Translations under genes and position numbers: made by a program
In this document: positions 51,224 to 53,432 of the stretch, in pieces
Numbering within the stretch: position 1 is the stretch's first letter
Layout: the number at the start of each line of letters is the position of its first letter
The notes under the pieces: generated by a model
What the model was told of the DNA's origin: nothing
The model's input: the letters and a program-made list of their open reading frames with translations, nothing else
Database searches by the model: none
From: Calcarisporiella thermophila CBS 279.70
Taxonomy: Eukaryota; Fungi; Calcarisporiellomycota
Reading direction: 5' to 3'
Length of the DNA: 64,000 nt
NCBI RefSeq assembly: GCF_041956535.1
Contig: NW_027192194.1
Span: 279,444-343,443 of the forward strand

Positions 51224-52040
51224 TTTTAAGTACGATCTTATTCACCGGAATTAGAGGTATTAATTAACTGAATTCAAAAGAAACAAAGAAAATGGATTAG
51301 AGGATTAAGTTAAATGATGTGAAAGAATAGTTTTTTATGTGTGATTGCGAAAATGAGAAGTGCTGAGTTCTCTGTGTCTTTGTACAACCCTTGGGTAACA
51401 ACTAGACCAATGTATATGTTTAAAGCAATCTGTGCTATAAATTCTAAAATATCTAAGTTTATTTTACGTGTGAGAAGTGGAATCGTCTAATGAATATCAG
51501 TAATGCTTGGTTGACTATATATTTCGAGTTGCCTTCTACCTCTGCGTACATAGTACTCTACTGTGTTAAAATCTGATCGCGGAATGTTCTGGTGCTGTCG
51601 AAACTGTTCTCGTATAAATTGATACCAATGTGGACGTGATTGCTTATAAAGCATTTTGGTTAGCAGGTATTATAAAGAGAGCTTATACAGTAATACACAC
51701 CAGAGGTTTAGATCTAGCTGCGCGCCAACAATCCCTGTAAAGAATCAATACATCATTTTGAAGTCCTGACCGCATTGCAATGTTAATATTTCGAAAACAT
51801 AAATTTGGAGAAGTTAAGCCACGAGCAATTCTGAAAATTCACACCTAACAAAAATTTTCGAATGTGTACATCATCTAGAAAGAGTCAAGAGCAAAATTAT
51901 GAAAAAAAAAAGCGAAGGCAAAAAATAAAGGCTTAAGTATCGATAGTGACTCTTTTTTCACAAAGGGTTATTCTTTTTTTTATTTAAAAGAATAAACGAA
52001 CTCTATTCATTCTACATTCACTTTTCTCACAACTCAAATT

Positions 52041-53432
52041 ATGCCCAAAATTAAATTACGCTTAAACACAGATGCTATATCGTCTCCATCACCACAACAA
52101 CAATACGATACTAATCCCATTTCAACTTCACGCTCATCCCAATCACCTCCACAGAGCTCTAACGACTCTCCCGCACCTACACCGATCAGAAAACCTGATA
52201 AACGACGAAAATATGACTGGTTAGAGGAGGATCAGGAATCGCCTATTATATCTAACACTGGTGATAAATCCGCCAAACGCAGTCCCAATCAATTGCACTC
52301 CAATAGTACAATTAATGATTCACAGGGGATGACTGCGGATGATGTGACTACTGAAACAAAGCAGCTAGAGGAAAATGGGTTTGCTGTTCCACTACCAAAG
52401 CCAGAACCACCGCCTCTTTCGGCAGCTACATCCGAGCAAAACTCAAGCACACCCACACTTCGAACTCGTGGGGGCGGTCCAGGAAGCCGTGGTGGACGTG
52501 GAAGAGGAAGAGGCCGTGGCCGAGGTAGGGGCAGAGGTGGTCAGTCTTTTTTGGGAATTGGACACGCAGGGTAATATATATCTTTATTGCTACATATTTA
52601 CATATTCATCTCATGTACGACATCTATTAATTGATAGATCTCCTCTCAGGGATAACTTTGCTCCTGATTCAAACTCCAGTCCGGTTCTAAGTGATGGTAA
52701 AGAATATTATAGGATATTGTCAAAGTTAAAGAAGCAATGTTTTAAGGATGCCGAGATTATTAGGAGCACGAGATTCAGATTCAATGGCACAAAATGGAAC
52801 TATAAAGGTGGACAAAAATGCCAAGCCTCGAACGTGGAAGCGGCAAGGCATTCTGCTTAAGACACTGGGCGGGGAGGTGACGGTCCCTGGATGGGTGACA
52901 AGTAAGTAAACAAAATATATATATTTCGTCAAGAATTATATTTATGTTTACCATCATTAGCACAACCAACTACGTTGACTGTGGATCCAACGGGTAAATC
53001 TATGTCGATGAATGTGGCTCCATCCATTTTAGAATCGTCAGCTTCATCGGCTGTGGAAACAACCCCCACGGCACGACCGTATATGTGCATGCAACCCAAC
53101 TGTACTCGGTAATATGAAATTGAATAAGTTTTTCTGATGATCACTTAGCTACAACCAATTTGTAATGTAGGGCTTTCGCTGATCCGACTACATTACAGCG
53201 ACATATCCAAAATATGCACGGCACACCTAATTATGTGTGTGGGGTCGACGGCTGCCGTCGCAGCTTTGTTACTCAAGGTCAACTGATCAAGCATCAAAAG
53301 ATGGTGCATCTGCAAACTTGGAAGCGTAGAAAGACAAATACTACTCCCAAAGATGTCAATAAGGAGCAGCCTTCATTATCGCAGCCAGAGAACGCAGCAG
53401 AAACTCCGCAGCCGCAGGCAGAAGAGGAATAA
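52041..53432 (+). CDS. YY1/Pho-like (Ies4/Iec1-related) C2H2 zinc-finger protein with RG-rich region and REPO/2W motif
   Basis: Exons 52041-52570, 52638-52696, 52764-52901, 52961-53108 and 53171-53432 join in frame through GT-AG introns. Product has a GRGRGRG tract, WKRQGILLKTLGGEVTVPGW and two C2H2 fingers. Confidence 0.78.

Follow-up and report, generated by a model that had tools for sequence, protein, structure and literature searches.

A spliced gene of about 374 codons, in five or possibly four exons, lies on the plus strand at positions 52041-53432 of the window, the whole 64,000-nucleotide stretch of DNA analysed here, as modelled by hand and by script. Downstream, the gene for Atg2 starts 220 nt after its stop codon and extends from 53652 to about 60863. 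Just upstream, the minus strand contains a short ORF at 51487-51654, which resembles by eye an exon of the LYR-motif kind (complex 1 LYR family). The features of the spliced gene are listed below in window coordinates; GC is given as a fraction and LLR is the log-likelihood ratio of codon usage, with the long ORFs of nearby genes as the training set.

52041..52570, plus strand: exon 1, 530 nt, ending in phase 2; GC 0.483; codon LLR +60.6, in this frame only
52044..52064, plus strand: PKIKLRL, protein residues 2-8, fitting the Taf14 ET-binding consensus Phi-x-Phi-+-Phi-+-Phi
52461..52541, plus strand: Gly/Arg tract, an (RG)n repeat read from the sequence
52571..52649, plus strand: intron 1, 79 nt, GTAATA...CAG; GC 0.278; retention leads to an immediate stop
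52650..52696, plus strand: exon 2, 47 nt; GC 0.447; codon LLR +9.0 in the required frame
52697..52763, plus strand: intron 2, 67 nt, GTAAAG...TAG; GC 0.284
52764..52901, plus strand: exon 3, 138 nt, bearing the hairpin; GC 0.514
52835..52894, plus strand: REPO-like 2W motif, W-x18-W, 20 codons, with a KTLGGE turn/core
52902..52960, plus strand: intron 3, 59 nt, GTAAGT...TAG; GC 0.203
52961..53108, plus strand: exon 4, 148 nt, linker and the two Cys of finger 1; GC 0.493; codon LLR +8.4
53086..53219, plus strand: zinc finger 1, C-x4-C-x12-H-x4-H, split by intron 4 (53109-53170)
53109..53170, plus strand: intron 4, 62 nt, GTAATA...TAG, within finger 1
53171..53432, plus strand: exon 5, remainder of finger 1, finger 2, a basic stretch, an acidic tail and the TAA stop; codon LLR +18.3
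53238..53309, plus strand: zinc finger 2, C-x4-C-x12-H-x4-H, also matched by the regular expression

Exon 1 begins at the first ATG after a stop and keeps its frame open for 177 codons. All four introns are of the GT-AG type with lengths of 59-79 nt, and the exons (GC 0.45-0.51) stand out in base composition from the introns (0.20-0.28) and the flanking sequences (about 0.3). Joined end to end, the exons give 1125 nt free of internal stops, while each of the introns, if retained, brings a stop into the frame. Each exon gave a positive codon LLR in its proposed frame and in no other, and the introns gave values around or below zero; for exon 3, the LLR was +9.0 in the frame of the hairpin but -6.8 and -22.6 in the other two frames. 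Excision of intron 4 generates a canonical C-x4-C-x12-H-x4-H finger, which is the strongest single support for the proposed splicing. As judged from splice sites, GC contrast, frames and codon usage, the splicing model is internally consistent, in agreement with the initial annotation, which had proposed a spliced gene of five exons. A four-exon variant is also possible, in which exon 1 is joined directly to 52747 and exon 2 is skipped, again in frame.

The model might be wrong where the hairpin sits, exon 3 being skipped or spliced otherwise so that the hairpin falls outside the main product. Exon 2, the least certain part of the model, and intron 2 leave room for such an error, as do the existence of a second in-frame model and the 5' splice sites of introns 1, 2 and 4 (GTAATA, GTAAAG and GTAATA, respectively), which are unlike the GTAAGT of intron 3. 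The hairpin, however, is retained in both the five-exon and the four-exon models, the donor of exon 3 is GTAAGT, the commonly cited consensus form, and 52764-52901 has the codon usage and GC of coding sequence, in the frame of the hairpin. We therefore regard an error at this position as very unlikely. Two details of the initial annotation need correction: the coordinates given there for exon 3, 52835-52894, are those of the motif while the exon itself spans 52764-52901, and the motif, described as absent from every listed ORF, is found inside a 53-aa ORF (52748..52909) once short ORFs are listed.

The product of exon 1 is a Ser/Pro/Gln-rich N-terminal region, which is probably disordered; Pfam detected no family on any piece of the protein other than exon 5. 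The Gly/Arg tract that had been noticed ahead of the hairpin is present at 52461-52541, and its only similarity in PDB is to the C-terminal GR tail of SmD1 (E 3.9e-4). An RG repeat such as this is typical of the tracts that undergo arginine methylation and bind Tudor domains. Taf14 is a subunit of the INO80 A-module in yeasts. The sequence PKIKLRL near the N-terminus fits the consensus for binding to the Taf14 ET domain that has been reported for Ino80, Sth1, Snf5, Taf2 and Sas3 (PMC7442819), but for such a short motif a chance match is expected at about 0.1 per protein and this one could be chance.

The hairpin motif in exon 3 is bounded by two Trp codons (TGG at 52835-37 and TGG at 52892-94), and both the W-to-W spacing and the KTL core pointed out in the initial annotation can be read there, as W-x18-W with KTLGGE. 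They agree with the REPO/spacer pattern, a hairpin of two strands between Trp residues 18 apart, with K-T-[LM]-x-G-E at the turn. This W-x18-W motif occurs once in the six-frame translation of the window, and the genome contains no second copy of the hairpin exon. When the 45-aa piece encoded by exon 3 was compared by phmmer with 177,635 distinct PDB sequences, the only matches over a single stretch were the spacer of Drosophila Pho, from a co-crystal with Sfmbt (4c5h_B; 17.1 bits, E 0.052, with query residues 10-44 aligned to chain residues 23-57), and the REPO peptide of human YY1, from a co-crystal with MBTD1 (4c5i_C; 13 bits, E 1.1, with query residues 22-43 aligned to chain residues 5-26). 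Neither alignment contains a gap, and thus the two Trp residues are in register. The proposed likeness to REPO is thereby borne out, the nearest solved relatives of the hairpin being Pho and YY1. The E-value of 0.052 is by itself marginal, and the segment had been chosen beforehand for its resemblance to YY1; over 177,635 sequences it corresponds to about 3e-7 for one pre-named target, and the expectation stays below 1 when every 45-aa segment of the six-frame genome is taken into account.

In the same search, nine WD40 entries of PDB, all of them proteins, natural or designed, that are built from many identical repeats, scored above Pho and YY1. A WD40 repeat was rejected as the identity of this exon, because the scores of these targets are sums of 4-6-bit matches to one query stretch, none of which passes alone, because the gene contains one such stretch without tandem units, and because Pfam finds no WD40. 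A search of a representative protein library with the hairpin exon likewise returned multi-repeat WD40 proteins only.

The residues of Pho in contact with Sfmbt (Alfieri et al., PMC3828522) were mapped by position, by hand, onto the window sequence. Six of the contacts are identical or conservatively replaced (V153 to I, I155 to L, K156 as K, M158 to L, V164 as V and W167 as W), and three are lost (K151 to Q, E159 to G and M166 to G). The AF2 model of the 45-aa piece forms short strands at 22-26, 29-33 and 36-40, at the places expected for a hairpin, with low confidence (pLDDT 62), and Foldseek comparison of this model with PDB gave no meaningful match. As for Ies4, the fungal subunit with a related motif, the Pfam profile INO80_Ies4 (PF08193) did not match the hairpin pieces at E up to 10, and the PDB search with the hairpin exon gave no Ies4 chain up to the same E-value. 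The same profile found no match in the six-frame genome, where its control was silent, a result which does not show a separate Ies4 to be absent. Of the two kinships considered in the initial annotation, to REPO or to Ies4, the former was recovered in PDB as the Pho spacer and YY1 REPO, and the latter was not recovered with the Pfam family.

The C-terminal part of the protein consists of C2H2 fingers, as detected by Pfam zf-C2H2 on exon 5 in two stretches (33.3 bits, E 5.4e-8), and their number before the stop codon (53430-32) is two, where YY1 has four. In a PDB search with exon 5, GLI ranked highest (37.9 bits), yeast and Xenopus TFIIIA, ZNF410 and AEBP2 also scored above YY1, and YY1 itself (1ubd_C) appeared at rank 11 with 27 bits, indicating that the fingers are not specifically YY1-like. 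The best alignment to YY1 falls toward the C-terminus of the 124-residue chain of its finger domain, at positions 79-117, which we take to be ZF3-ZF4 rather than ZF1-ZF2. The fingers of YY1 have H-x3-H spacing. The neighbours of exon 5 in the Atlas belong to generic C2H2 or TFIIIA-like clusters. Of the earlier assignment of these fingers to ZF1-ZF2 of YY1, the presence of two C-terminal C2H2 fingers holds, while the specific correspondence fails on the rank of YY1, the H-x4-H spacing and the C-terminal location of the best alignment. The junction of the hairpin (52835-52894) with the fingers (53086-53309) in one spliced gene was confirmed. Five other C2H2 loci were found in the genome with the finger piece, and the 2W motif was absent from the vicinity of all those tested.

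The properties of the fingers raise the possibility of an ordinary two-finger fungal transcription factor, in which W-x18-W would be a coincidental likeness within a disordered linker, with no Arp module as its partner. Factors with two C2H2 fingers are frequent in this genome, and such a factor would account for fingers that match GLI, TFIIIA and ZNF410 better than YY1, for the marginal E-value and the modest AF2 confidence of the hairpin, and for the resemblance of this stretch to one strand pair of WD40. It would leave to coincidence, however, that exactly Pho and YY1 emerged as the top single-stretch matches in the whole PDB set, ungapped and in register, that the order of REPO followed by fingers reproduces the plan of YY1, and that exon 3, the exon of highest GC, has a clear coding signal in the frame of the hairpin. 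On these grounds we consider an ordinary transcription factor rather unlikely.

The search for relatives gave little beyond the PDB matches. No relatives of exon 1 or exon 5 were found in a word-indexed protein collection, the length window of which excludes full-length proteins, two metagenome scans with exon pieces gave no relative, and a usable neighbour for the hairpin was not found in the Atlas. The best relatives of the adjacent Atg2 are from Glomeromycotina, with 55-64% identity in the conserved C-terminal region, followed by those of Mucorales and chytrids, indicating that the organism is an early-diverging fungus, one that seems to lack a near relative among sequenced species. At the Atg2 loci of six fungi (two Paraglomus, Rhizophagus, Gigaspora, Bifiguratus and Syncephalastrum), an annotated zinc-finger gene upstream was absent, and the two Paraglomus loci gave no match when they were searched by tblastn with the exon pieces.

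The 2W hairpin in Ies4 and YY1 binds actin and Arp4 in the A-module of INO80 (Kunert et al. 2022, PMC9733932), and on the basis of cryo-EM fungal Ies4 and animal YY1 have been argued to be the same client of this module, even though their sequences barely align (PMC9733932). Ies4 has no DNA-binding domain (PMC9733932). S. pombe has Ies4 as a core subunit of INO80 in its own right. In plants, AtYY1 carries REPO and fingers and associates with INO80 (PMC10146089), and in fungi two C2H2 subunits of INO80, S. pombe Iec1 (PMC5406019) and Neurospora IEC-1 (PMC8373062), have each been called YY1/Pho homologues; Iec1 and IEC-1 co-purify with INO80 and recruit it. In the literature covered, which was partial, a published link of Iec1 or of any fungal protein to the REPO hairpin was not found. 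The genome of this fungus contains a gene for the INO80 ATPase, as identified by its DBINO domain (G000:C14:540207-540602, E 1.5e-50). Actin-like loci number at least four, including a near-whole actin coding sequence of 346 codons in a single exon (G000:C5:954164-955201; L006:1501-2538), and the Arp4 gene of this genome is multi-exon.

The window protein shares with YY1/Pho and AtYY1 a disordered N-terminal part, a Gly-rich tract, a 2W hairpin of the REPO/spacer type and C-terminal C2H2 fingers. It differs from them in several respects: it has two fingers instead of the four of YY1 or the five of plant AtYY1, its fingers have H-x4-H spacing and resemble YY1 no more than they resemble GLI or TFIIIA, its tract is Gly/Arg in place of Gly/Ala or Gly/Lys, and several of the residues with which Pho contacts 4MBT are changed. 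With Iec1 and IEC-1 it has in common that it is a fungal C2H2 protein, a likeness that follows their published description and not their sequence. Like Ies4, which bridges actin and Arp4 in the A-module of yeast and C. thermophilum, it has a 2W hairpin; unlike Ies4, it carries two C2H2 fingers and gives no INO80_Ies4 match. In contrast to S. pombe, where the hairpin subunit is separate, the hairpin and the fingers are joined here in one protein.

Hairpins of the 2W type have also been reported in subunits of SWI/SNF-RSC (Rtt102/BCL7) and of SWR1/NuA4 (Swc4/DMAP1) (PMC9733932), and REPO binds 4MBT proteins as well (PMC3828522). The window protein shares with Rtt102, BCL7 and Swc4/DMAP1 the idea of a minimal two-Trp anchor, but these belong to other complexes and lack zinc fingers, and no sequence match to them was found. 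A Pfam search of the genome for MBT gave one gene, an intronless ORF of 968 aa (G000:C14:524405-527308; L025:2906-5809, plus strand) with a score of 81 bits. Of MBT, four spaced repeats in its product match the barrel core only, and SAWADEE, MSL3 chromo-like and Tudor-knot fit these repeats about equally; they are parted by long linkers of low complexity, RG-rich and acidic, and the GWCA clamp helix is absent. As predicted from these repeats, it is a four-fold Tudor-knot/chromo-barrel protein and not a 4MBT protein of the Sfmbt type. About 13 kb separate this ORF from the gene for the INO80 ATPase. Search of the genome for the VEFS-box (SUZ12) gave no match, its control being silent.

A PhoRC-like pairing of the window protein with a 4MBT protein was rejected because the genome search revealed no canonical 4MBT gene. 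The suggestion of a Polycomb-recruiting role in the initial annotation finds no support here, the sole MBT-scoring gene being without the GWCA helix and the compact 4MBT layout. An alternative is that the protein is a genuine 2W client of another actin/Arp module (SWI/SNF-RSC or SWR1/NuA4), or a ligand for a reader of the Tudor/MBT type, and not a client of INO80. The occurrence of 2W hairpins in all these complexes, the affinity of REPO for 4MBT, the presence in this genome of the Tudor-knot/chromo-barrel protein that scores on Pfam MBT, and the RG repeat, a typical Tudor ligand, are all compatible with this alternative. We judge it to be quite unlikely, however, as the hairpin sequence is closest to that of Pho/YY1, whose hairpin sits in INO80, and the MBT-scoring protein has neither the clamp helix nor the compact arrangement of repeats.

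Taken together, we favour on balance, with modest confidence, that the gene encodes a two-finger protein with a 2W hairpin of the REPO type, acting as a DNA-reading client of the actin/Arp4 module of INO80, and thus a putative fungal member of the YY1/Pho/Iec1 kind. The presence of hairpin and fingers in one gene, which is the layout of YY1, supports this reading; orthology to YY1 is putative. The two fingers would read a short DNA site, and the two Trp residues of the hairpin would dock on nuclear actin, at its Gly-Pro turn, and on Arp4. The docking surface would be the HSA-bound A-module of INO80, as in the case of Ies4 and YY1. The docked hairpin, together with the fingers, could then tether the remodeller at chosen promoters or tune its activity there. 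In this fungus, the window protein would correspond to the YY1 of animals and plants, uniting in one chain the roles that are divided in Dikarya between Ies4 (hairpin) and Iec1/IEC-1 (fingers).

A further step would be to regard the protein as an ancestral fused INO80-targeting subunit, kept in this early-diverging fungus and split later in Dikarya into Ies4 and Iec1/IEC-1. We hold this evolutionary scheme to be improbable. The initial annotation had also inferred the placement of a DNA-targeting INO80 module before the animal-fungal split. Given the published AtYY1, Iec1 and IEC-1, this idea is not new; since plant AtYY1 combines REPO and fingers, this architecture was already known to predate that split. 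The broader picture is therefore unchanged, REPO plus fingers being documented in plants and animals and zinc-finger subunits of INO80 in fungi. It is plausible that the gene represents a new family member with a layout known from animals and plants, and introduces no new principle.

A fungal protein with a Pho/YY1-like hairpin plus fingers would nevertheless be a useful bridging sequence between Ies4 and YY1, and would make it practicable to ask whether the targeting of INO80 to specific sequences goes back to the ancestor of fungi. If the protein is indeed the ancestral fused form, it would provide direct sequence evidence for the orthology of Ies4 and YY1, which Kunert et al. inferred from structure alone.
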